DNA of 64,000 nucleotides from Fimbriosthenelais zetlandica (GCA_977030845.1 OZ365110.1:27652001-27716000), one strand, 5' to 3'; positions 6,517 through 60,719 are shown, counted from the stretch's first letter. The notes: generated by a model from the sequence alone, not told the origin. A program made the numbers and translations.

Positions 6517-9500
6517 CGTGCGGCAAATTCTGACCTTCAGCTTTACTTGGCAAAGGTCAGGCCCACGTGTTTCCAAACCTTTACTTCTGTCACTATACTC
6601 CACCTCCCGACTCATTTTATGGGATGCCAAATGCACAATAAAAGCAATTACCCAAATAACGGGAAGAACCAGAAAAGGATTTCTAGAAAAATATTCACCA
6701 TCAGTAAAATGCTCCTGGAGAAACTAAACACAGTTGTATTTTTCTTATACTATAGATAGTAGTAAGTACCCTCAATATTTCTAATAAAAATAAGAAATAA
6801 GATGAAAATGGCACTCCATAAAACATTCATTCTCGCCCACACTGCAAACAGTAAGAAGTGCAAAGTTCAAATAACCAAGGAGCATCTATGTCGGTGTAGA
6901 TACATGATACACATTCTTGAAAAATCAGGCCAAATTGGAAGCGTTTACCAATGGTTTATTTTGCTCATCCCCTCTTGACAGCATAAAAATGTGGCAGAAA
7001 TCCGATCTTACAAGCCTAGTCCAATTACACCATGGTTAAACAACACTGACGGCTGACACGGCCAGGCCTTGTGTAATATTATATTCATATTTTAGGATAC
7101 GTCAGATATGAATAATAATGGCATATTTACTTTCATCATTTGTACCTGACTTCAATCCCCAGCCGTCTGGTTCAGGTCCCAGGGCCCCATACCTGGCTTG
7201 TTTTTAACTAGGCCATGTCAAACTGGGCATGCAATATCATAAAAATGTTCTGAGCAAATATTTATGATCATTTATCAGCGTCAAGTAGAGGTGAGTTGGG
7301 GAATGACAGATGCGATGGGTGACAAATAGGAAAACAAATTTTGGGTGATTGGTGGTTGATATATCCACCCGACATATCGACCTTATCAGGTCTATTCTAG
7401 TCCTTCTCATCTCAGCATCTCCCTTCCTCTATCTTACTTCCCCTTCTCTTCATCTCCTTCTCATTCCTTCATTCCTTATGATACCCTTATATATTAACTC
7501 TTGTCATGGTATGCCGAGACTGAATTGCCCATTTATCGCAAAATTAGTAAAGTATGTCGCACAGATTTAATGTCTACGAACGTTGCACAACCTCTCAAAA
7601 TTAAGGAATTATTTTAACATGATTGGGTTTTTAATGAGACACCCTTCTGGGCATATGGACTAGCTCTGTCCTGCTTCTGGTCTAGTCCCATTCTCGCCCA
7701 CCTCACCCCTCCATCAACCCCAGCCTTTCAAGTGACCGTGCAGACATGTACATCGTCTTATTAAAGCATTGCCTTGCTTGCACCATCCCACTGACTTTTA
7801 TAGCTTGGTGATCTAGAGGCTTATTTACGTTCACACACGCCAAGCTCTGTGAATGAAAAACCCCAAACAGCACCTCACACCTGGTCGTAATAGTTCCAAC
7901 CCGAGTCACGCAGAAGTCACACCACTACTGAAGACCCTGCCACAAAATAAGCAAACAGTCAGGCTATCCGAAACCCTGCCTGATGACAGGACACATCTTG
8001 CCAATGAGGATGTGCACATGTGCTCTTAGTTTTGTGGGATCGTGCTTGGGGTGGGGCATGTTACCTGTAACACACCTGAGATATACTCTTACACCAGAGA
8101 GACTACAGTCTCTCTGCTTACACGTAACCTCATATACTATAGGCCTACGCTTACCTGTACTCCCTTGCCACAAACTGTTTATCACATGGAAAGGACTGGA
8201 AGAGTTATCTTATTCTTTCTTGATATCTTGTATAAAGCTTAATCAGGTCTGGTCGTATCCATAAAATTCCTTTCAATGGAAACCAATTACATTGATAGGC
8301 CTATGACAATAATACCGAGTATTATAATATAATCTGACAAAAATACTACACATTGGCATTTAGCAAGTGTAGATAAGATTCAATTCCTTTCTAGTCAGAA
8401 GTAATGCAAATCCAAAGCACTTATGAATGCTCAGGTCAAGCATATAACGTCCAGGACCACGTACATCCGTTCAGAATTCACACACATACCTCTTCCTCAT
8501 CTGCCATCCCTTTACCATCAGGCCAATCATACAGAGTACATAAACACTGACCACGGGTGTTGACAAACTTTGAGAAAGCTATTTTGGCTTGAAAACGACC
8601 GCCGGCATAGCACCCCTCCGGCGTAGTGTACAGGTATGCAGGAAGGGGGCGTGCGCTGCGGTGAGCGATAATAGGTGGTCAGGGGAGTGGGGCCAAGACC
8701 GGTGTGAGCAACTCAGGCGAACGTGAAAGGTCAAGGTTAACCACGGAATGGCCAAGTTATTAACGCTCAACATTTGGGCAGGTTGGATTTGAGAGCATGA
8801 CTGAGGGAAATCCATGTGTAAAGTTTGAAAGAGAAAATCGAACTTTCTAGACTAAATAGGACTTTCAATCTATACCGCTGGATGTAGGGCCTATACAGGG
8901 CTATTGACCCTAAAGTCAGGCTTAAATGGGATTGTAGGTTATAATTGTTATAATTGCACCTATTCAATTTATAATAGTAAAGAAATTCACAACCTCCAAT
9001 TTAAAAGTTTAACAATAAAATAGTTGCCGCTAGAAAATCTCTCTCTCTCTCTCTGATTCTAAGGTATGACCGCACTATAGGAATTCAACAGATTTCCTTT
9101 TGAAAGGAAAAGTGCTTGGAATTTCAAAAATAATATTAGGGAGGAAAAGGAGAAATAAATGCTTGATGCTTCTGAAGCGAAGAATTGCTGACAATGAAGA
9201 CTGTTAAAAAAAAGATGAGAAAAAGTTGTCGCAAGTACAGAGGAAAAAAACCGTTCGAGAGTGCATTATGTAAATGGGTGTGCCAACAATAAAGCCACTA
9301 TGAGAAGGTAAATATACCAAACATATTTCAGGGCTAGATGGGGTTCAACCTCTGTGATTTATAGCCCCATTGAAACCTACCACCCCAGTCGAACCTCAGA
9401 CTTGTTGGACCCTGGATTCCAATCTCCGCCAATAGAGCATGTACGGGCAAATAGGATTGTGGAGACATGGAATGAAATAAATAAATAAAACCGTGAGTCC

Positions 9501-12500
9501 ATAATTAGGAATATGATAACGGGCCTTCTCGATATCAAATTGAAATTCCTATCCTTTATGACCCAATATTCCAAATCCAAGGCATCAATTTTATATAATG
9601 AATCTATGCAACGGGAACGTAAGTTGCGAAATCTGTGGAAAAGAATAAAGGCAGTGAAAACAGCAAACTTTGTTTTGTCAAATGTCCGATCATATATTTC
9701 AATTAAAAGAAAAGAAAGTAAATGATTTTGTAGGGATAGATGGCAAGTCTAATACTAAAAGCCCAATCTTCGCCTAAGGCCTATACACTGCACCTTATGT
9801 CTTGTTTAGCGAAAGAATTATGTTTACATTCGGAACATTAGCTTTTGCTGGGGTCAGGGGTCTCTCTAATTGTCTAAGTCTCGTTGCATAAACGTGCCCT
9901 GGACATTTTTTGTCTTTACTTCAACAAGCAAATGATGCCTTTTAGTTAAAGAGGTCTTGGCTACTGCATGAACCTAAGCAGTTAATGTGCCAGAAAATGG
10001 GGAACCATTGGCAGGTCTTGGATTTGGAAAAATCCATTAGAACCCCAGACACTGATGTTGAACATTAATTATATTGATGGAATGGTATTCAAAAGATAAT
10101 AATTTGAAAAGTTTGACATAAAGTTGATCATCATCACTATAGCATTTTCCCTCTTACTACCTACATAGTATTGTAAAAGATACCTCAAGGCGAAACACGA
10201 TGTTACACTCACCACAAGCATGATTATCATTTGGGATGAGTCTGTAGAAGAGAACCAAGTTGATATAGGACTCATCAAAGTATCCAGACTGAAAATACTG
10301 TCGGATTTCTGTGTATAACCACATAAAATACTGGCCTAAGAGAAGAAAATGAAGGGGCCATCGTAACGGATATCTACTGTTGCATGCATTTATGAAAAGA
10401 CCGAAGTTTAGATTTCAGAATATTAGATAAAAATTATATCTCGATCTCCACGCATGCTGCTCGAAAGAATTACACCCCTTTAAGGCATTATAGTCAACCA
10501 TCTCATTATAGACGACTTGACGCAATGGTCAAGGCACTTATAAAGAAAATCACCATAATTAGGCCAGGTTGCTGCAGCCTCTTCAGGCACTTACATCTCA
10601 TTGGACTAGAGGGACAATAACCTATACACCTAAATTAACAACGGAACTGTTGCTAATTAAGGCAACAGACGGACTCAAGTATCCCCGACAACTTCTATAT
10701 CATTGACGTTGAAGAGGGGATGATTGAAGACCGTGCGAGTGCCCTCTAATTGAAAGATCTTGAAAAAGAACTATGGTCCTCACACCTGACTAGTGCCTAT
10801 AGAGTCCAGCCCTGGGCTATACTATGGTAATTTTTCCTCTTGGGCAATTCACCACACATTATTTCTAATGCCATCACACATTAAAGGCTATAAAATCTGG
10901 GAAATTAATGCCATTCATGTCTAAAGGAAACATTTTTATAAGTATTTTATGACATGGTGTGTACAACAGAATCAGATCAGAAGTAGTGGATATGGAGATG
11001 ATAATAATGATAATGGAATCCTTGCCCTCCAGTCATGCAAGCTGGAGGTTGTGAGCATGAGGCAAGAGTTACAGAATAGCCAACTGTTGATGCAGTCACT
11101 GAACATGCATTACAACCAGCTGCCACCGCCAATAGCACCGCACCCAGACATCCATTCACAGATGTGCTAGCCCACTCCTTCCATGAATCACATGTATATA
11201 CACCATTCCAATGATATCAATGCACATACTCACACACCAGTATAGCATATCAGTGGTTTGGCTCAGATTACTAGATCATCGATAAGAAAAAACTCAAGAT
11301 GCATTTAAGAGCAGCTGCGGGTGTAGGTCATATTGGGGGAAAAATGCGAAAGAGTGCATGAAGACCTCAATACTGCTAGACAGAGTAAACAAATCGGACA
11401 ATTTACTAAATTGTAATAAATTTGTGATTCATTGGAATGTGTCTGGAAATATACCTAACTTTTATTTCTAATCGGAAATTTGTTTCCTCAATTTATGGTT
11501 TATAGCTGTGTGTCGATATAGATAAGCAGTGAGACTCATAGCGTTTGCATTTTGATCTGTGGTCATGTGTGATGAACTTTTTTTCGGAAGAAGACGAAGA
11601 CCTCATCTGAAAGGACCCATGTTGAGCCAAACCATGCTCAAAATAACTTAAACATGCTACTGACTGCCTCCTCCACAGCATCTCTTATTGACATTTAACT
11701 GGGTGCACAAGATTAGTGATGTGGTTACCAAGTGCAGCTTTTTAAATGATGTTAAACATTTAGAAAAGACATCATATTACGATTCAAAATCAACTAGATC
11801 CCTGTTTAGGATGTAAAGTATGTCACATGTTAAAGAGCTGAATACACAATGGGAATAATCAATTATCTTCATGGGCATATTATTCTAAATTGTATAATAT
11901 TGGAAGGTAACAATAGTACACTTAATTTAAATATAATTTCACACCTGGCCAAAATCCAGGTTGAAATTAAATTGATGAAATAACACTCACTAAATTTAAA
12001 TCAAGACATCAGATTGAAATTTGTTGGTCTGATGGGACAGGAGAAAGTTTGTCTCATTTTATATGCCAACAACCTTTCATCTTCCTTCTCCACTGAAACA
12101 CCGATAAAAGTTCTGTAACTTTCTCCATGCAGAGTGGAGCGCGACATGAAAGAGGACCAATAGCTGAATCGGAACATTCCTTGGGAGAGCACCAGATATA
12201 CCTGGTGAATGTTCGCATGAAATTCCGGGAAATCCACCAGTCTTTTTTCTATAGAGAAATCAAAGGAATCCTATTTTCAAAGGAAGTGAGCTAGTTCAGT
12301 ACTCGTAACAGAGACAGAGACCATAGCATGTGACGAGGAATGGATGTTTCGGTGACCACCTGTGAGCTCCCGTATACCTGAGGGACTTATCATCATGTAT
12401 CTACATGGGAGAATGCCTCCACTCCACAATTATTCTAATATCACATACAGCATCCAACATCTATTATTGTGCCAGGTCAGACTCGACTTCTAACATAATC

Positions 12501-12936
12501 TGATGACTTTTCAAAAAACCAGTGAGTAGAAGTTAGGGGATATATAAGATATTTTTATACCACAATAAGGAAAGGGGTGTTATCTTCAATCCCTGTTTCT
12601 TCAATCTTCGACGTTTCGACATCCCAATAAAACATTCACATTCTCCCAGGTTCAGCTAAAGTCGCCCCTTAGCTGTGGTCTGTAAACTGACAGCAGACCT
12701 GTCCCACCTATGGGGATGCTACACAAGTACCCCTGTATAAAGCATTCCAATGCCAGCCACCTTCCCTCACACAGCATGAATTACATAGACCTGGCATATA
12801 AAAAAGACTGATTGCCATTCTTGTTGACGCTCACAATATGGTCTCTACGGATCCAGAAGTTTTTCTCTTATTTCCTTGTCTCAACTTCTCTCTATCCCAA
12901 TCTCAAAAGATTGTTACCGATTCTTGTCAATTATTT

Positions 12937-13063
12937 ACGCCATAGTGACCGACACTGAATCCGGTATAGTTCACTATTGCTGATAAAGCCGCAAGGCCGA
13001 AGGCCGCGCGGCTGAGTCAGCAATAGTGAACGATACCGGATTCAGTGGAGGTCACTATTGCGT
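12937..13063. repeat. 127-bp imperfect palindrome (47-bp arms) with apical GGCC-GAA-GGCC mini-hairpin
   Basis: Left arm 12937-12983 versus right arm 13017-13063 shows 4 mismatches in 47. The loop contains AGCCGC...GCGGCT and GGCCGAAGGCC (12995-13005). Confidence 0.95.
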
Positions 13064-13899
13064 TTAGTACACGTCACACATTAGAATGCGTCACACAATA
13101 GAATATACAAGATCAGTATTTTAACTTGTAATGTGTTAAAACTGATGACTTTTGACTATATTTGTCCCCTCTTCACATTCGTAGCCACTACTCCACCATT
13201 CAGCCTGCTCCACCCAACATACACTCAAACACATACACCCCTGTGCCATACACATGTTTCCATACACACACCTCCTCATACTGGCGGCACGACGGCCGGA
13301 GGCCGGAGTGCCGCGTCACGTACAATGTTTGTTTGTATACAGTCTTGGTGCCAACTTGATGAGTGACACACTGTAGAGAAAAGCAATAGTGCATCCTTCA
13401 TACAGACTTCATTTATGCTAAGCCCTACACAACCCCCCTCCCCCCACCCCGATCAGAAATAATCGTGGAATCTGTGACAGCTGGACTGTATCAATGCCAA
13501 CGGCCTCTCCCCGGCAATGAATTAATGAACTGTTCAGAAAGGAGTTATTGAAAATGTTAGACACTGGTCAAGGATAATAAAATGATTTTTATCGCTAAAC
13601 GTCTCATCACTATTTTTCTTGCCCTTTGTTGAGGTGATGCTCAGGCTCCATTTAAGCGAGAATTCGCTAATTTCTCTGTTTCTGGGACAGCTACGACATG
13701 TCACAAGCATTAGGATAAGATTACATGATGTTTATTTCTCAATGTGTCCTTCTCCCCTGTGACAGGACATAAAAAATGTCTACAAGCACATAACAAGTGA
13801 CCAATGACCTTCAGCTTACAGGTGCTAGTTATTTGGCACTGTGGGAGCAAAGTTGGCATTACACAAGTCATTCCCACGTAAGGAACATCAAGAGACAAA

Positions 13900-16276
13900 A
13901 TGCAACAAGATTATCGACCAAAATTTTCAATAGGACAGTTTGTCGATGTAGAGATCGAAGGGTCTTGGCAGCCAGCCCTTGTCCAGGATGTTTCATTGAG
14001 AGGATACAGGGAATACACTGTTTGTCTCATAGACAAGGCAGAGGTCCTCAAGGTGTGCTCTTCGAAACTACGACCATCTCAGACATTTTCCCGAATGCTG
14101 GCCGAGGAGTTAGAGACAGAAGTGCAAGATCAAAGTCAAAGTCAGGAAAGACTTTCTCATGTTCACTGGGCGGATGATGATGATTTTGAAGAAGTGGCAC
14201 CCAAGAAAACACCGCCTACCAAACCTCCAAGATTTAAAAAACTCAGTGAACCGGAGTTAGATTCGATCCAACTTGCTTCGAAGTCCAGTAAGACAAATGA
14301 CTCCACCAAGTGGGGAAGTGCAATATTCAGAGGTGAGTTTCCCCCTTATACGGGCATTTCTATACTATAACTTCTAGGACATACATGTAAGTGTTACACA
14401 TTCATCGGATCATTGGTTTGCCAATACAGTCCAGATGGACATTTTGCCTGCATTTAATTAGGCACTTTTCCCACGTCCGACATTAAGGAGCCGACACAAA
14501 AGTATCATTTTCTTTGGCCTTTGTGATCTCTTTACTGTTCCTATTCCTCAACATGGTCGTTTCGGGGTCAATTCTATGGAGATTCTCACATGTCAAAGTT
14601 ATCTTCTTTTCTTCTCAGATTGGTTAGCCGAGAGACACTTACCCACCAACTTTGAACTGATGTCCTCCCAAGACTTAGCCAACGCCTTGAGGAGGTTCTA
14701 TGGAGAGACACAGATGCGTAATGGTGAACCTTACAGCAAGGCTTCACTTCTTTCTATCAGAGGTGCTATCCAACGTCAACTCTCTGCACCTCCACACCAC
14801 CGTCACCTTGACCTGAGGAACGCCCCTGAATTTGCACCTGCAAATGCTGTCTTGGCAGGAAAATTCAGGGAATTAAAAAAAGCTGGACAAGACAGAAGCA
14901 CCCACCATCATCCTATCTCTGATACTGATTTGCTTAAACTCTATCAATCCGACCTCTTTACAACTGTCAACCCTCAGTCCCTACAGTTGAAAGTTTTCTT
15001 TGAAATGACCCTTCATTTCGGACGTAGGGGCAGAGAGGGACTGAGGGACTTGAAGGCGAAAGACGTCATATTCAGGAAAGATCCACACGGCCAGGAGTAT
15101 GCAACCCTTGCCTTCCAGCCTCTTGAAAAGAACCACCAGGGTTTTGATAGGAACGCAACTGAGCATGATCAGAGGATGTATGCTACAGGAGGGAGTAAGT
15201 GCCCTCTCAACTCACTACGCACCTATTTGCAGCATCTACATCCGGACTGCCAAGCCTTTTTCCAGAGAGCTAAAACAACTAAATGGGAGACAAGTACATC
15301 GTGGTACTGCAATATGCCCATTGGTGTCAATACTATAGGCAAGTTCATGGACCGGATTTCACAGAAGGCAAATCTCAGTGAGCGATACACAAACCACTGT
15401 ATCAGGGCAACAACTGTCACCAGTTTGCGAGATCTTGGTATAGAGGCAGCAGACATTATGTCGGTTACAGGGCATCGAAATGCTTCCTCTTTAGAGCACT
15501 ACTCCACAACATCCGCACAGAAAAGACAGCATATGTCCAATGCTCTATCAAAAAAGCTTGGGTATATAATTCCAGGCAATGGACAGGGACAGGCGAAACA
15601 GGCAAGACCACCTTCTGCTGCCTTAGGTCGTCCTCCAAGTCCCCACCCCGACGATTCAATTCCACCAGCGAACACCTCACCATGCCCAATAATTCTCCAG
15701 TGCACTACTGCACCACATGAAGCAAAGGAAAAGTGCACTAGTGCACCAGACAAACCAAAGGACAATTCGCCTGCCCAGACAAAAGAATCAAGTACACATG
15801 TATCTCAGGAAAAAGGTCCGCAGTGCACTACTGCACCACAAGAAGCAGTGCAAAATTCCCCTGCCCACACCAACAAATCAACGACACCCGCACCTGGGGA
15901 AATACCTTCAACATCATCAACAGCAGAAGGCATTGCACCTGTCCTTCTTGTCCCGTCAAGGGTGGCCAAGATGACAATGGAGGTTAACAGAACACAGAGA
16001 CCAGTGGGCTCACAAACCTTGGCCGATGTGGAAGGCAAAGGGAAAGGGAAAGGGAAAGGCAAGGCTACTCCCTCGCACAATATATTTCCTCCTCCTGTAG
16101 CCTATGAGGAAGTCAATTTCAATCTTGAACTGGATTCAGGTGAGACGATTCCTCCCTCACAGGTGGTGTTAAAGGACAAACAGCACGGACACGAGTGGAA
16201 ACTTGTCAATGGTGTACGCTCCTTATTTGATAATGCACATTTCACTAACTGTACTTTCAACATTAATATAAAATGA
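13900..16276 (+). CDS. Crypton-type (DUF3504-like) tyrosine recombinase with N-terminal Tudor/Agenet-like domain, 696 aa
   Basis: join(13900..14332,14619..16276) with a GT-AG intron (AG|gtgagt ... ttctcag|AT) gives 2091 nt in one open frame, joining STKWGSAIFR|DWL, a typical Crypton-like segment. Catalytic motifs: FGRRGREG (R281), EKNHQG (K315), TNHCIRAT (H404, R407), VTGHRN (H430), SLEHY (Y439). The C-terminus FTNCTFNINIK is also typical of this family. N-terminal residues 7-59 (KFSIGQFVDVEIEGSWQPALV...YTVCLIDKAEVLKVCSSKLRP) fit a Tudor/Agenet beta-barrel pattern. Confidence 0.9.
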
Positions 16277-16913
16277 GGGTATGACACCAGAGAAGGTGAC
16301 TACAGGTTACTGCTTCGTTCACTCCTTCTACACACTAGGCAGTGATCTGCTTCATTGTCACCTACTCTTCACACACATCAAAAGACAATATCGTTTGGTT
16401 CTTAAGTAGACTCAGTTCATTACTTGCAGACAAAGTTTACATTGCTTACACTGCCATGGACAGTAAATGTTATTGGACTTGGACTATGTACGTACACCTG
16501 TGAAAGGATTATAACCTATAGTAATTTTTGTTTAGCCTCTTAGACAGTTGGACATACACATTGACAGGCCCAACTATAATATATTTAGCCAATGTATAAA
16601 GTAAGCAAAGCTTACTTTCTCTGGATCAGTGCATATGGTTCATACTCATAACGCAGATTGAAAGAGAATTGTAGGCTTACAACTTAGAAGTCCGTACTCA
16701 CTGTCATATAAAATAAGCAGCACTTAGGCTGACATATATATAAAAGTAATAGTGCATGCCTTTCATAGACATTACACTTATATGTATTAAAGATGACATG
16801 ACTTTTTCAGTTCGTAATTGAATTTGTCATAGGCTCATAGACGTTCAATTTAGATAGCCAAAGTAAGAGTTGTCAATGTTACACTCAGGTAAGAACTTCG
16901 TCGATTTTAGGTC

Positions 16914-16919
16914 AATAAA
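16914..16919 (+). terminator. Likely polyadenylation signal of the recombinase transcript
   Basis: AATAAA about 640 bp downstream of the stop codon, immediately before the right-hand TACCGATTCT copy. Confidence 0.4.
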
Positions 16920-17573
16920 TGTACCGATTCTACAATTTGTCATCCTATTGTCATTGCCCAACGCACATACACTTTTCTATACATTTCAAGACATAATCGG
17001 GCACAACATGTCTTTCCCATGACAGCACCAAGTGAATAGTGCACCCCACACATACACGAGCGACCGTCCCTATCAGTACACTCACCACACATCCTACCAC
17101 ATCCCCTCCTCAGATCTCCTCCCTACCCCTCCTTCTCTGCATGAAGGGAAAAGTGATAGTGCACGCTCTTGATACACATTGGACAGGGGAAGGGTGCAGG
17201 AGGTTGCTGGGACGTGGGTGGGTGTGTAGGGGTGGTGCGTTCCGTGTCATGAGGAGGCAAGTAGTGAACCAACCCCTCCTTCACTGTACGAGATATTTAC
17301 ACCGTACGACAGCCCCCTCAGTGCCGTCATGTACACTATAATGGTGACATAAGACATTTATCCCATCCCACCATCGATGTGTGCATAACACATAATGATT
17401 ATAAAACATAATTCAATGAGTAATTCTCCTTTTAATGAGTTACAAGTGATTCATGCTTGGACCAGGAGCATGACTGACCTACTAACCACCCCCATGTGAC
17501 TCGTCGGAGGTCGGTGAATGAGGTCACTTGGCCAGTGTCAAGATAAAACGCTCATTTCCCACCCTGTATATCA

Positions 17574-17791
17574 GTGATCTTCGTAGGTCAGTGGTAACGT
17601 GCCTGCTTCTGGCACGGCAGGAGACGGTTCAAACCCGGGTAAAACCAGTACAGTGCACCATCAGTCTGGAGCGACTTCTACAGGGTTCACTACGGGGAAC
17701 TGGAGCGACTTCTACAGGGTTCACTACGGGGTAATAGTGAAGCTGGTATAGTGCATGAAAACGGGGTAGTAGTGTACTAATAAATACTAAT
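17574..17791 (+). mobile_element. tRNA-derived SINE (degenerate)
   Basis: A-box-like TAGGTCAGTGG (17584-17594) and B-box GGTTCAAACCC (17626-17636). An anticodon-like arm GTGCC-TGCTTCT-GGCAC (5-bp stem, 7-nt loop) lies between them. A non-tRNA body follows and ends in the tail TACTAATAAATACTAAT. Confidence 0.65.
17666..17731 (+). repeat. Exact 32-bp tandem duplication inside the SINE body
   Basis: CTGGAGCGACTTCTACAGGGTTCACTACGGGG at 17666-17697 and 17700-17731. Confidence 0.95.
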
Positions 17792-20700
17792 TTCCTTAAC
17801 AACTACATCACATCTACATCTGCAAAGTTTGACATGCAAGGAAAACCAGTATAAGCCAGAACAGTGCTTCAGTTGGATTGCCTGAAATATAATTTCTCTT
17901 CACCTGCCAGAGAGGAGTGCCAGTAAATCAAGCCATCTATAGGTACATAAACCCTGGCTTATCTCTACTTCTGATGACCACTCGTTTCTCCAGGGTCAGG
18001 GTTATCAGCCTGATAATGGGATAGGGCGGCGCGAGTTTATCTACCCTTATAATGGTTCGCCCCCGGCGTTAGTCTTGCCCGGCTCCTCATGCCTTATCAG
18101 TTAATTGATTTTTGCTTTTCATTTTCATAATTCCTTCACGGAAACAGCCCTGAAGGGCGTGGAGGCGGTCTCTTTGACCAACGAGTATAGAAAGAATACT
18201 CGTTGCTTTGACCACCTGCACATGGTCAGTTTTGGACTTAAGGCCGTCATCCACTTGTGCAATATACTCAACTTAGACATGATATTGTTTTTGCAATAAT
18301 ATTATTACGAGGCAATAAAGGTTATTAATAGTGGTTTGGTTTGGTAAAGGCCATCCTCCACTTGTGCGATTCATTGTGGGAGACACGTATAATGGACATT
18401 GTCGCAAAGAAAACAGTACTAGAAGTAGATGGTATTGGTGTGGACATCCTTGCCCGATAAGAAGGTAAGACCACAAGGTTCTATCTATATTCCTGGCACA
18501 GATCTATACAGATTATACATCAGATATTCGTTGCATCATAGCAGCCACTGACATAATAATAAAATGTAATGGTATAATTGAAGGGTTGTTTCAATTGGAA
18601 GGGCTTGGACCAGTCTATGCTCAATGTGTGGCTATCTCTGTGGTTTGGGGCGGTGGTAGGAGCGGGGTGGTACCTTCACTAACAGGGAAGACACGTGGTA
18701 TATGACGTTAACCCCCCTCCATCCTCATCTTCGTCCACACCCATCACCCTCCAAAGTCCCATATTCAACCCCATCCCCCAGTCTATATCCACCCTCCCTT
18801 AAAACCACAAATACAGTTTCTCCCTCAAATTATGCCACACTTCACGCACGCGCATGCCTTAAAGCATGCGCACATCCTTATCTCGATGACCTCGTCCCTC
18901 TTCAAAAAATACACATGACACAGAACCCGACCACGTGAGGTATAAGTGGCCCTCTGGATCTTTCCATCAATTGGTAAACTTTGGGGAAATATGCAGAGTA
19001 ACAGGGGACATGCTACATATATATGGAATTTCTATCACCAGCCTGTTCAACCAAAACTGCATATCTGACTCAGTAACCTCCTATTTTCTTAGAGTAAATC
19101 CAGTCCATCTCCGATGGATTCTGAAATATTCCCCTCCAATTGAATTCTCCCACAAAACCTAAATCTAAGTTGAACCCTTCCCCCACACACAGAGAAGGCA
19201 CCCGTCATATTTATACCCTCAATATATTAGCGATCAACACACAAGGGTATGCCTGGGGCGACATGCCAAGGGTCTATAGGAGGGAGCGGGACCTGCGCGC
19301 CGAACCATATGGCACGAGAACGCCACGACCGGGATTCCACTCAGATGACCTTCACCTCTGGCTCTTTTATTCCTCCAGGGTCCCTCCCAGTGTCGCTATG
19401 GCAGCAGAAGCACCAGTCACATACCCACCCACCCACTCCCCCTCCACTCACCCAACCACCACTCGTCCTATGAGAAGGAGGACCTGAATAAGAATTCGGC
19501 GAACTCCACAAAGTTGACATCTCAACCCCTATAAATCTTAGGTATTTCGAAGCAGGTCAGCAATATGATTATTTTTAATATTAAAGGGATTTAACCTCTG
19601 TGATGGTATGTATTTATAAAGTGTCACCTGTGGTTAATTTTTTGGGAGGGCAACATGACCAAAATGATAAAAGTTGGAAGTCAATTTAATGATGCTCAAT
19701 TGGATTAGATAAACGACATAATCCAAGAGAGGATCTGTCATAGAGAATGTCTCATGAGGATTGTTCAGATCACTTTATTGTGATTCCGAGCAATTATATA
19801 AGGCAACAAAGTAACAATATGTGAATCTATCTATCTTTCAAGGGAATGTCTTGATGTTCAGTTACGAAAATGTACCCTGAGTTATTACCTTCAGAATTAA
19901 TGTAACAGTATAATTTACTGAGTCATTGATGGGGGGCTAGAAATGGATTTACCGTGTTTAATAAATATAACATAAAAACCCAGAATCTCTGCGCCAAAAA
20001 GCGAGGATAAATCACGAGTGTAATACTTGTCTCGTCTCAGGGTCAGGATCAGAGGGCTCTCTATGGACTGCATGCCAAAGTATACAGTGAGACTCATTCA
20101 AACATCCATTCATCTGTTATAGCCTCATCTCTCTGGCAGGAAGTCTGTAATACCAACTGCAATTTTTGTGGTTCAAGTGATACCAAACAACATATAGATG
20201 AGTGTCCATTTAAACATGTTACCATTGTAGACTGCCTACCAGACTTACTATAGAAACTCTGTCAGACAAGTATCGGCTAATATCGGGAGAACAAGCCCTC
20301 TCCAGGGATGATGACCTCAGGAAAGCTGTATTCTAATAGATCAATGATATAATACAACAATATAGCAGAATCCTACTATAGATTTTTTAAGCTAGTAGAA
20401 TAATTAAGAACTTTCAAGATGAGAAGGTCAAGGTCTAACCACTTTGGTCCACTCAGGTCACGCTCAGGTCTCGCGGCACGTAAACGAGATCATTGTATGG
20501 GTGTTTCAATGGGGGCAATCATAGCAGTCATGGCGTTTGTGAATATACTGGTTAATGCATACATGCCCCGGGGGCATAAAGCTTATACCCCCTGAGGGGG
20601 TCAATCATACATCATTCCATCCCATATGATAATCACTGACCCCACATGGTAGCGCAAGAACCTCACATTGGAATATTAAATGGGCAGTTGATTTTCATTA

Positions 20701-39142: not shown

Positions 39143-41212
39143 CAGCCTGGTGAGGTCTTGAGTAAGTTCGATAGTATTGATCGCACATATCTCATTGGAC
39201 GGAAGTGGTATAAGACGTCCCGCTGTCGCCTACAGTCGCCATTTTTATCAGAGACATGGGAACATAAATACATGGGATCTGGTTAGTCTAAAGGATCGCC
39301 CTATCCCGGCAGACGCCCGTCTGACCATGCTTATTTCTGCTATGGCACAAAGGGAAGTTTCCATTTTTTATGGCGAAACAATAAATTGATTGCATATAAT
39401 AAGAACAGAGTTGCTCCTTTTCAATTTCATCACTATAAATCATTATGCAACAAACTAGAGCAAGAATTAGGCCCATTTCATATTTAAGTGAAGAACTTTC
39501 AATGGATTTCAGCATATTGAATGAACATTATACAGTGTATAAGAAAGACATCATGGCTTGGACATATTATCTTACTATATAGCCTAGGCCTATGTTTCAT
39601 AATATCAACTTTTATTCAGTTAATATCAAATTTTGTTCCTTCTAATTTAAGTCTTAATTACAATAATCATTAATGGAAAAGAATTTTGTTCTTATAAATA
39701 TCTTGAGTTGTAAAGCCTATAGCAACAAATAGCTATAGTTAAGTATTCAATTAAGGGTATAAAACCATCGTAGCATATCTTAGCAATACTATATTAATAT
39801 AATATATTATTAATTTATCTATAGAAGTTGTGTTTATTTTGTGTAATCTCCTATATCAAGCAGGCCATCACTGAAGACATTACACAGAATGCCCTATTTT
39901 CATGGAAAAGTTACATTACATTTCGGGATCCCTGGATCTCCTATCGCTGTATTCATTGAGACATCCAGGGTCGCAAAAGGGGAAAAATATAAAATATATA
40001 TATATTGCCCAAACACAGCCCAGACAGTTGGGGTGGTCGATAACCTCCCATTTCCATATACTACTAAGAGGCTAAACGTCCCTCCAGCGCCGGTCCGCCA
40101 CAGGCCTGGCCATTAGATGATGTACAGGCGATAGAGACGTTCTCATGGGAACCAATCATATCTTCTGAGGAGGTGAGGGCCATATATCATTCAGACTGAA
40201 GAGATGGTACACATTCCCCACCACAGACCAGGTCATCATATACAAAGTAAGCTTCCATAGGAAGCCGTTATATAGTCTGTAACATTTGCAATTTCTGGAT
40301 AAAGGAGCCCAGTAGCTTCGGGAGGGAGACTATATGTAAGTGAAAGCTGCAGCATCTAAGGGTTAGGCTTTCTGCAATATAGGCTATTAAGCCTACCGTA
40401 CTACTATAAGTGTAGGCCTATCTACCACCCTTGACAATCTCCCGCTATTGTTCCAATTATGGCTCCTTTTATTGAAGCGGTCCCCCTAATTCAGAGATGA
40501 AATTTTTGTCGCTCAAATTATTTATTATTTTAGATGTGACACCATCTCATGTTCCCTGATGAAATTGCAAGTAGGCCTACTGGCCCTATAGGCTATAGGA
40601 GGGATCTGGCAACACGTAATCATATTTCCCATCTTCCCAAGCCATTGCCTATAGGCCTACCGGACTGGTTATAGGCCTACGACTATCAACCTACAATTGG
40701 CATAGCAGCTAGGATTCATCCCTATAGAAGACTAGGGCCTACTGTCTATTTTCTTATGTTTTCCATTACCAAAATTATGTTTGTAACGTCTTTCTCCATA
40801 CCATCGGCATAAGTCTCACACACTATATTAGTCTATATGCCGTACCGGTATATTATATTCCAGGAAAAGTTTGTTTTCCACATTCCCTCTAGACTCTACT
40901 CACATAAGCTTCACATTTGTAGTCTAGCCTGTACGGTACTAAACTAGGCCTATACTAGATCTATACGGTACCGTACCGTACCTACTAGTACTGTGGCCAG
41001 GCCTATTAACCCTAGTGTGGGTTTATGCAAATTTGGTTTAGGTATATATCTGTCTGTCTATCTATAAGCTCCAGAACCAGGAAAATATTATTTATGCTAC
41101 GTTAGGCCTACGGCCTATACTAGGTTATAATGATAACACATGAATGTCATGACTATTGTCAGTATTGTCTATTGATTCCGGTGTAAAGATTTCATATTTC
41201 CCCCGGGAAGTT

Positions 41213-41423
41213 GAAAACGTTTCAAATTCCACCGGCAGGAATCTGAAAACGTTTTTAAGTTCCCTCCTACAGGAATATGAAAACGTTTTCAAATTCACTC
41301 CCCAGGAATCTGAAAAGGTTTTCAAATTCCTGATGTGGAGTAAAAGCGGGGAGGGAATCTGAAAACGTTTTCAAGTTCACTCCGCAGGAATCTGAAAACG
41401 TTTTCAAGTTCCCTCTCCAGGAA
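41213..41423 (+). repeat. ~33-bp minisatellite with palindromic core TGAAAACGTTTTCA
   Basis: About 6 degenerate units of GAAAACGTTTTCAARTTCMCTCCNCAGGAATCT, interrupted once near 41331-41354. An inverted partial copy lies at about 41460-41480. Confidence 0.9.
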
Positions 41424-41486
41424 ACCTAGCCAGTAGAAACCAGGTAGACAGTAAAACTTGTTCAGATTCCTGGGGGGAACATGAAT

Positions 41487-60502: not shown

Positions 60503-60719
60503 TTGTACAATAAAATCGTAGATGGCGAGGGATCGGCGAGGGTGCCCTCGCGGTGCGATTAAATTGTTGAAGTGCTGTTTTTTTCTAAAAAGTGCTTGGA
60601 TAACTGCATGTTATTGCATTATCCAAGCACTGTTTTCTCAAAAACAATGCTTGGACAATGCAATTGCTCCGCGAGGGTACCCTCGCTGATTCCTCGCCAT
60701 CGACGATTTTATTGTACAA
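60503..60719. mobile_element. 217-bp nested palindromic MITE-like element with 51-bp TIRs ending in TTGTACAA
   Basis: Arms 60503-60553 and 60669-60719 show 4 mismatches in 51. Each arm contains the palindrome GCGAGGGTRCCCTCGC. An internal hairpin AGTGCTTGGATAA...TTATCCAAGCACT is present. No TSD is visible. Confidence 0.8.

Follow-up and report, generated by a model that had tools for sequence, protein, structure and literature searches.

We consider it probable that an imperfect palindrome upstream of a tyrosine recombinase gene is the terminal cis-structure of a Crypton-type transposon of about 4.85 kb, and that it acts in a folded form, probably as a substrate of the recombinase. The palindrome lies in the window, by which we mean the whole 64-kb stretch of DNA analysed. 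A comparison of sequences with related elements placed it in a conserved class of long, imperfect palindromes at element ends.

The palindrome and its proposed element in the window

The arms of the palindrome (12937-12998 and 13002-13063, 62 nt each) are 85% complementary and are separated by a 3-nt GAA spacer. Only three inverted repeats of at least 40 nt are present in the 64-kb window. Folded as single-stranded DNA with DNA parameters, the palindrome forms one long hairpin of -58.8 kcal/mol, and none of 200 dinucleotide shuffles equalled this fold (-15.9 +/- 2.6 kcal/mol, z = -16.6). The initial annotation had described 47-bp arms with 4 mismatches, four ATAGTGA half-sites and a GAA-triloop apex, and all of these were recovered (Table 1). 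The mismatches in the outer 47 nt of each arm lie at four positions (C/T, a GA/GA pair and A/G), and ATAGTGA and TCACTAT are 22 nt apart within each arm, as annotated. Inward of the outer 47 nt, an AA/GA loop and an AA/GC loop precede the apex GGCC-GAA-GGCC, whose central heptamer is CCGAAGG (12997-13003). A 16-bp tandem repeat had also been noted beyond the palindrome; the repeat is real, but its period is 17 bp. The GA/GA internal loop, a second hairpin and the motif copies in the 3' non-coding region go beyond that first reading. The 4-bp direct repeat TTTA stands on both sides of the palindrome (12934-37 and 13063-66). An Rfam scan of window positions 12500-18200 returned nothing relevant, and an exact search of the JGI metagenomes with the arm sequence gave 0 matches.

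The second hairpin (31 nt) lies 220 bp past the main palindrome and consists of a 7-bp stem, a GA/GA loop, a 5-bp stem and a GGA triloop, without long arms. It is the only module of the form GA-stem-GNA-stem-GA in the 64 kb, against 0.13 expected, and may represent either an additional site or what is left of a second palindrome. Two other structures were seen in the window. A foldback at 60503-60719 has 101-nt arms (82% complementary), a 15-nt spacer and TTGTACAA sites; since the ATAGTG motif, GA/GA loops and a GNA apex are all missing from it, nothing ties it to the Crypton. On the minus strand at 41101-41119, TAGGCC-GTA-GGCCTA forms a GGCC-GNA-GGCC mini-hairpin like the apex of the relatives L005 and L006. 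It adjoins a field of tandem repeats (41205-41445) and may be related to the TAGGCCTA scars of this genome.

Table 1. Coordinates of the features in the window and of the palindromes in five relatives (YR, tyrosine recombinase)
Sequence	Feature	Position	Strand	Remarks
Window	Proposed 5' terminus TTACGCCATAGTGACC, outer end of left arm	12935-12950	+	Aligns with relatives' termini
Window	Imperfect palindrome, 62-nt arms, GAA loop	12937-13063	+	Inverted-repeat search, fold
Window	ATAGTGA copy 1, outer left arm	12942-12948	+	
Window	GA of symmetric 2x2 GA/GA internal loop	12951-12952	+	Partner GA at 13048-13049
Window	ATAGTGA copy 2, inner left arm	12971-12977	-	
Window	Apex GGCC-GAA-GGCC, C-GAA-G triloop	12995-13005	+	
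Window	ATAGTGA copy 3, inner right arm	13023-13029	+	
Window	ATAGTGA copy 4, outer right arm	13052-13058	-	
Window	TTAGTACAC, directly past palindrome	13064-13072	+	Inverted repeat of proposed 3' terminus; same arrangement in L001 and L002 family
Window	Tandem repeat CGTCACACAWTAGAAT(G)	13072-13104	+	Period 17 bp = 16-nt motif + one G; 1.9 copies
Window	Second small hairpin GCGGCAC-GA-CGGCC-GGA-GGCCG-GA-GTGCCGC	13284-13314	+	
Window	ATAGTGCA copy, 5' non-coding region	13386-13393	+	
Window	Exon-1 ORF of recombinase gene	13900-14370	+	ORF limits; splice site not mapped
Window	Exon-2 ORF, DUF3504 + Phage_integrase tyrosine recombinase	14576-16276	+	
Window	Direct ATAGTGCA copies, 3' non-coding region	16749, 17036, 17156 (16749-17163)	+	
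Window	34-bp tandem repeat, GGTTCACTACGG (inverted GTAGTGAAC) in each unit	17666-17731	+	
Window	Small inverted repeat TTCACTA-CGGGGTAA-TAGTGAA, 8-nt spacer	17720-17741	+	Followed by ATAGTGCA at 17748 (to 17755)
Window	Proposed 3' terminus GTGTACTAA, tentative	17772-17780	+	Inverted repeat of 13064-13072
L001 (55% to window YR)	Palindrome, 83-nt arms, 94% complementary, 3-nt loop	6334-6502		180 bp before exon-1 ATG
L002 (51%)	Palindrome, 47-nt arms	6952-7058		180 bp before exon-1 ATG
L003, another assembly (52%)	Palindrome, 73-nt arms, 99% complementary	6660-6859		Upstream of exon 1
L004a, same family as L002	Palindrome	6552-6656		Upstream of exon 1
L008, Ptychodera flava (41%)	Palindrome, 68-nt arms	7268-7435		Upstream of gene

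A two-exon gene begins with the ATG at 13900, 837 bp downstream of the palindrome, and its product matches DUF3504 (5e-08) and Phage_integrase (3e-06) in Pfam. Both exons are common to the relatives by tblastn, and the HxxR and GH...Y motifs are invariant in the recombinases of 11 relatives. Within 12935-17780, no further ORF of at least 80 aa with a family match was found, nor any reverse transcriptase, and the ORF search revealed no replication protein encoded by the element. Past the catalytic domain, the recombinase is of low complexity, with a 33-nt repeat (15698-15862) encoding QCTTAP-like units and a GKGKGKGKGK run. The CCAAT box at 13801-13805, near the ATG, suggests that the promoter lies close to the gene and outside the palindrome. 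The relatives carry GATTGG about 60-70 bp before the ATG, again well downstream of the palindrome, and a promoter function of the palindrome itself is therefore unlikely.

The sequence ATAGTG[AC] occurs 20 times in the 64 kb, and 11 of these copies fall inside 12935-17780, where 1.5 are expected. In addition, all window copies of the 8-mers AATAGTGA, TAGTGAAC, ATAGTGCA and GCAATAGT (5/5, 5/5, 5/5 and 4/4) lie in the two non-coding ends of this interval only, and no element-specific 8-mer was found in the window beyond 17780. The ATAGTGA/ATAGTGC motif family is thus confined to both non-coding ends of the element, as expected of a binding motif. At 17156, the ATAGTGCA copy reads GATAGTGCACGC and so matches the L003 terminal motif at every base. 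The verified end TTAGGGAATAAC of the L002 family, TTAAGGGATAGTG of L003 and TTAGGGAATAGAT of L001 all align with the proposed 5' end TTACGCCATAGTG, as does TTACGGGTTAGAG, the reverse complement of the L036 terminus. The proposed 3' end matches the verified 3' end of the L002 family (GTGTTATAA) at 7/9 bases, and is tentative because a 9-mer match carries little weight by itself (the window holds twelve). On the basis of the motif confinement and of these alignments, the element is proposed to span about 12935-17780 (~4.85 kb), its ends being placed by likeness to the relatives.

Related elements and the terminal position of their palindromes

A word-indexed protein search with the window recombinase yielded 136 relatives, the best of them 50-55% identical and none near-identical. 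Palindromes were found at the same position in several of these relatives (Table 1), and their arm sequences are not alignable between families. In 270 kb around the relatives, 13 palindromes of such size were present, 9 at the conserved position and 4 elsewhere. Since this background amounts to only about 1 palindrome per 68 kb, chance co-location in five lineages is negligible. One of the four off-position palindromes, the second in L008, is of the same class. The palindrome is clade-limited and not universal, because no palindrome is present within 4 kb upstream in L009 (a chiton element, 41% identity) and the distant L004b/c lineage (21-24%) has no long palindrome, only a 7-bp hairpin. L013 and L029 are likewise without it. 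L004 11911-12208 was considered as a sixth case and was rejected as a MITE insertion missing from the sister copy.

Several observations were made beside these comparisons. Two distant Crypton copies (L004 11619-16800, recombinase 21-24% identical) stand head to tail right behind L004a, and only one of the two is interrupted by a MITE (11879-12248, 81-nt inverted ends). The second palindrome of L008 (10909-11050), from Ptychodera flava, lies 1.3 kb past the gene and has two TC/TC loops as well as the apex CTTCG. Its arm begins GCAATAATGCAC, which recalls GCAATAGTGAAC of the window, and the L008 element may have palindromes at both ends. L001 5638-5758 and L004 6411-6502 share a foldback repeat (81% over ~70 bp) at most a few hundred bp upstream of the Crypton 5' end. 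Protein P0098, a DUF3504 recombinase of the animal clade, has a 'Candidatus Thiodiazotropha' MAG as its NCBI source, and this annotation probably reflects host DNA binned with the symbiont genome.

The L002 family, with five copies in unrelated flanks, defines the ends of such an element. Homology starts exactly on the outer edge of the left arm, with TTAGGGAATAAC, and stops about 3.7 kb downstream at ...CGCCGTGTTATAA. No target-site duplication was found around the five copies. In the L002 family, L001, L003 and the window, the ends read T/TA...TA/A, with a repeat of at most 2 bp; we infer that this arrangement fits an exchange at TA inside a TTAA-like target. An inverted repeat of 9-12 bp ties the segment after the palindrome to the far terminus, namely TTATAACACGG to CCGTGTTATAA in the L002 family and TTATAATATAGT to ACTATATTATAA in L001, as TTAGTACAC to GTGTACTAA in the window. 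Among the 55 pairs of the L002-family arms, 16 show compensatory double changes and only six cells are broken over the five copies; this co-variation could come from gene conversion within the palindrome instead. The two full-length palindromes among these copies, those of L005 and L006, measure 173 nt with the apex GGCC-GTA-GGCC, and L002, L004a and L007 have lost the apex through central deletions while their genes are intact. In comparison with L002, the 5' module of L005 (3826-4544) and L006 (3816-4544), comprising the palindrome, promoter and exon 1, is 83-91% identical and the remainder 97%; this module was either exchanged between elements or evolves much faster.

In the L035/L036 pair, homology stops at the outer edge of the palindrome (...CTCTAACCCGTAA), which indicates that the palindrome is terminal there as well; in this pair, however, it lies 3' of the gene and the strands are exchanged. 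L076 comprises a tandem pair of elements that are separated by the palindrome. No solo copy of the palindrome was seen in 85 kb of the ENA genome. That the palindrome is a terminal cis-element of the window element can be regarded as very likely.

Strand-specific features of the predicted fold

Tandem G.A pairs are stable in DNA. A G-N-A triloop closed by C-G, with a sheared G-A pair, forms an unusually stable DNA mini-hairpin (PMC13037366, PMC3201870). The C-GNA-G triloop and the tandem GA loops are meaningful only in an intrastrand fold and not in a duplex. Both recur in the elements compared. The main palindrome and the second hairpin of the window have the same loop, C[GA]C/G[GA]G, with the apices CGAAG and CGGAG, respectively. 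L001 has the loops T[GA]G/C[GA]A and AA/AA with the apex CAGAG, L005 and L006 have two GA/GA loops each with the apex CGTAG, and L004a and L007 keep one GA/GA loop each with the apex deleted. A G-N-A triloop with a C-G closing pair on a G+C stem was thus found in both window hairpins and in L005/L006. In the L002 family, the GA/GA positions are fixed, whereas compensated substitutions are seen in the adjoining stem pairs. The apices C-GAA-G, C-GGA-G and C-GTA-G fit the GCGNAGC rule of the known mini-hairpins (PMC13037366, PMC3201870); the difference is that here they cap a 60-90-bp stem at a transposon end and are flanked by tandem G.A loops.

A wider sample was obtained by scanning JGI metagenome contigs with the alignment of 11 recombinases, which gave 80 loci of 28-50% identity. 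About 24 of the 80 carry palindromes, many of them 1420-1630 bp past the start of the recombinase match, that is, just past the gene. Palindromes downstream of the gene have TC/TC loops and CTTCG apices on the sense strand, equivalent to GA/GA and CGAAG on the opposite strand. The apex CGAAG was found in L047 and its complement CTTCG in L018, L032, L035a, L036, L076 and the second L008 palindrome; in L032 the apex, GGCCTTCGGCC, equals the 11-mer apex of the window in reverse complement. GA/GA or TC/TC accounts for 28 of the 35 two-by-two loops in recombinase-linked palindromes, where a uniform expectation is below 1%.

The purine features (GA and GNA) lie on the strand that reads 5' to 3' inward from the palindromic terminus in about 14 families, a count that is tentative because the families are not all independent; L008a, L045, L035b and L047 are exceptions. 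The fold energies of the top and bottom strands are 1.6-5 kcal/mol apart with mixed signs and are not decisive, and the model may not credit GNA triloops. The initial annotation had proposed a hairpin- or ssDNA-based mechanism, with integron IntI at attC as a precedent. The recurrence of C-GNA-G triloops and GA/GA loops on one strand in the relatives favours the hairpin, while the defining features of attC sites are absent. Taken together, the folded state of the palindrome probably matters.

Mechanism, alternatives and related systems

In the mechanism that we propose, ATAGTGA-type motifs are the predicted binding sites for the recombinase of the element or for its N-terminal domain. The palindrome would act with its purine-bearing strand folded, in an extruded cruciform or in single-stranded form, and would serve as a recombination or synapsis substrate next to the crossover point. 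Strand exchange would occur at TA within the TTAA-like target. The palindrome may be the direct catalytic substrate of the recombinase, although we lean slightly against this narrower claim. More tentative still is the suggestion that a clade of animal Cryptons moves through a folded-DNA substrate, with the recombinase recognising and exchanging strands on a terminal hairpin of one specific strand that carries a GNA triloop and sheared G.A pairs.

It is conceivable that the palindrome works only as a duplex, that is, as a cluster of double-stranded sites for the recombinase or accessory proteins, with dyads for dimers and no hairpin at any stage. Such a platform can be modelled on lox/FRT cores plus arm-type sites, or on subterminal transposase repeats. 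Canonical tyrosine recombinases use duplex sites (PMC3212892), direct motif copies occur outside the palindrome in both non-coding ends, like the subterminal repeats of cut-and-paste transposons, and each window arm is lox-like in having 17-nt imperfect inverted repeats around an 8-nt spacer. However, the 17-8-17 sub-site is absent from other families and was rejected as a general feature. A duplex platform also leaves unexplained the symmetric same-strand GA on both arms, the G-N-A centre closed by C-G, and the prevalence of GA/GA or TC/TC among the two-by-two loops of diverged elements, and we regard it as unlikely. Less probable again is an initiation signal or single-strand origin, at which complementary-strand synthesis would start on a single-stranded or circular intermediate, or be primed by folding back, without any exchange at the site. 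GCGAAGC-type mini-hairpins are found in single-strand replication origins, and the heptamer CCGAAGG held by ssiA is that of the window apex (PMC13037366). The strand specificity of the hairpin feature would also suit an origin, but the absence of a replication protein from the element does not, and the location of the palindrome exactly at the element boundary, together with the terminal motif, points to recombination. Moreover, tyrosine recombinases leave a 3'-phosphotyrosine and a 5'-OH, and their chemistry therefore gives no primer for rolling-circle synthesis.

The palindrome as an independent foldback element or MITE, inserted beside the recombinase gene by chance or by targeting, appears highly improbable. 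The TTTA on both sides is readable as a target-site duplication, palindromic MITEs exist in such genomes (that at L004 11911-12208 is present in one copy only), and the window has another, unrelated foldback (60503-60719). However, TTTA is better taken as part of the site architecture, since TTA opens the site after the palindrome in every family. Furthermore, five diverged lineages carry the palindrome at the same relative position, the five copies of one family all begin with it at different loci, and its motif is common to the 3' non-coding end of the element. Identity between copies drops well inside the element (about L002 7622-7998) and not at the inner edge of the palindrome, which disfavours a separate target MITE. 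The palindrome is therefore very likely part of the recombinase element, given its conserved position in diverged relatives and its place at the exact end of the five-copy family, and the initial annotation is supported in assigning it to that element. We give just as little credence to a protelomerase-like target, in which the recombinase would cut around the dyad centre and seal covalently closed hairpin ends. Telomere resolvases are relatives of tyrosine recombinases and act on long palindromes, and a hairpin end could well be capped by a stable triloop with G.A pairs. Against this stand a centre of odd length with 3 non-palindromic nucleotides, the intact genes of the apex-deleted copies (L002, L004a and L007), and the fact that whole palindromes travel with the element, whereas after central cleavage only half of each would be carried along.

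Under the preferred reading of a terminal structure that acts folded, the element resembles Cryptons (CryptonA, DUF3504) in that its one gene encodes a tyrosine recombinase with DUF3504 and Phage_integrase domains, that it lacks a reverse transcriptase and that its host is an animal. A further likeness is that relatives are present in several copies whose ends are defined, and that no target-site duplication is clear; copies at several loci with common ends are known here from the L002 family (five) and the L035/L036 pair. Animal Cryptons have been described without direct or inverted terminal repeats, and 50 copies of one family showed neither (PMC3212892). According to a 2022 curation guide, Cryptons are recognisable only by a direct repeat of a few bp (PMC8969392), and a 2026 paper on Glomhopper reports fungal DUF3504 CryptonA elements with no detectable repeats (PMC13465315). 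In contrast, one terminus here is an imperfect palindrome of 130-200 bp, and a 9-12-bp inverted repeat joins the post-palindrome segment to the other terminus. The terminal direct repeats of 4-6 bp without inverted repeats that serve as a criterion for Cryptons were not found. Because of the long terminal palindrome, the inverted repeat and a direct repeat of at most 2 bp, the element is a structural variant and not a canonical Crypton. No description of palindromic, hairpin or inverted-repeat ends for Crypton/DUF3504 elements was found in the limited literature searched, Repbase entries lying outside its scope.

Integron attC sites recombined by IntI are likewise imperfect palindromes with structure conserved over sequence, strand-specific unpaired features and two inverted boxes per folded stem, and are used by a tyrosine recombinase (PMC2727003, PMC5027507). 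They have R and L boxes, extrahelical bases and an unpaired central spacer and belong to bacterial cassettes, whereas the palindrome here has tandem G.A loops, a GNA triloop and boxes 22 bp apart at the terminus of an animal transposon. The RYYYAAC/GTTRRRY boxes and single extrahelical bases of attC were absent from the folds, which show symmetric 2x2 GA/GA loops and 1x1 mismatches. The resemblance to attC is thus one of mode and not of membership. In CTX phage, XerCD acts on attP(+) as a forked hairpin, in which a single strand brings together two head-to-head sites while the other strand is inactive; the mechanism proposed here would be similar. The genome of CTX phage is single-stranded, whereas we know of no single-stranded stage for Cryptons. 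Parvoviruses and AAV, as well as Helitron2/Helentron elements, depend on HUH nucleases, which leave a 3'-OH for replication, whereas the sole enzyme here is a tyrosine recombinase. Their terminal or subterminal hairpins are alike in being palindromes with conserved mismatches and possible flip/flop, and Helitron2 also shares short asymmetric terminal inverted repeats (PMC8969392).

The movement of Cryptons is still a model on paper, and the animal elements are not known to have any defined cis-acting site. A terminal palindrome with a motif, a boundary and strand-specific features provides concrete substrates for binding, cleavage and transposition assays, and an annotation signature for Crypton ends and non-autonomous derivatives. 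If the proposed mechanism is true, this would be a eukaryotic counterpart of recombination at integron attC and CTX attP, with a single-stranded or cruciform intermediate in animal tyrosine-recombinase transposition. To our knowledge, no hairpin-based tyrosine-recombinase system was known in eukaryotes before, and the element would be the first such case, as far as known, if the folded form is the substrate. The finding could also bear on the DNA that was once recognised by the domesticated DUF3504 proteins ZMYM2-4, QRICH1 and KCTD1.
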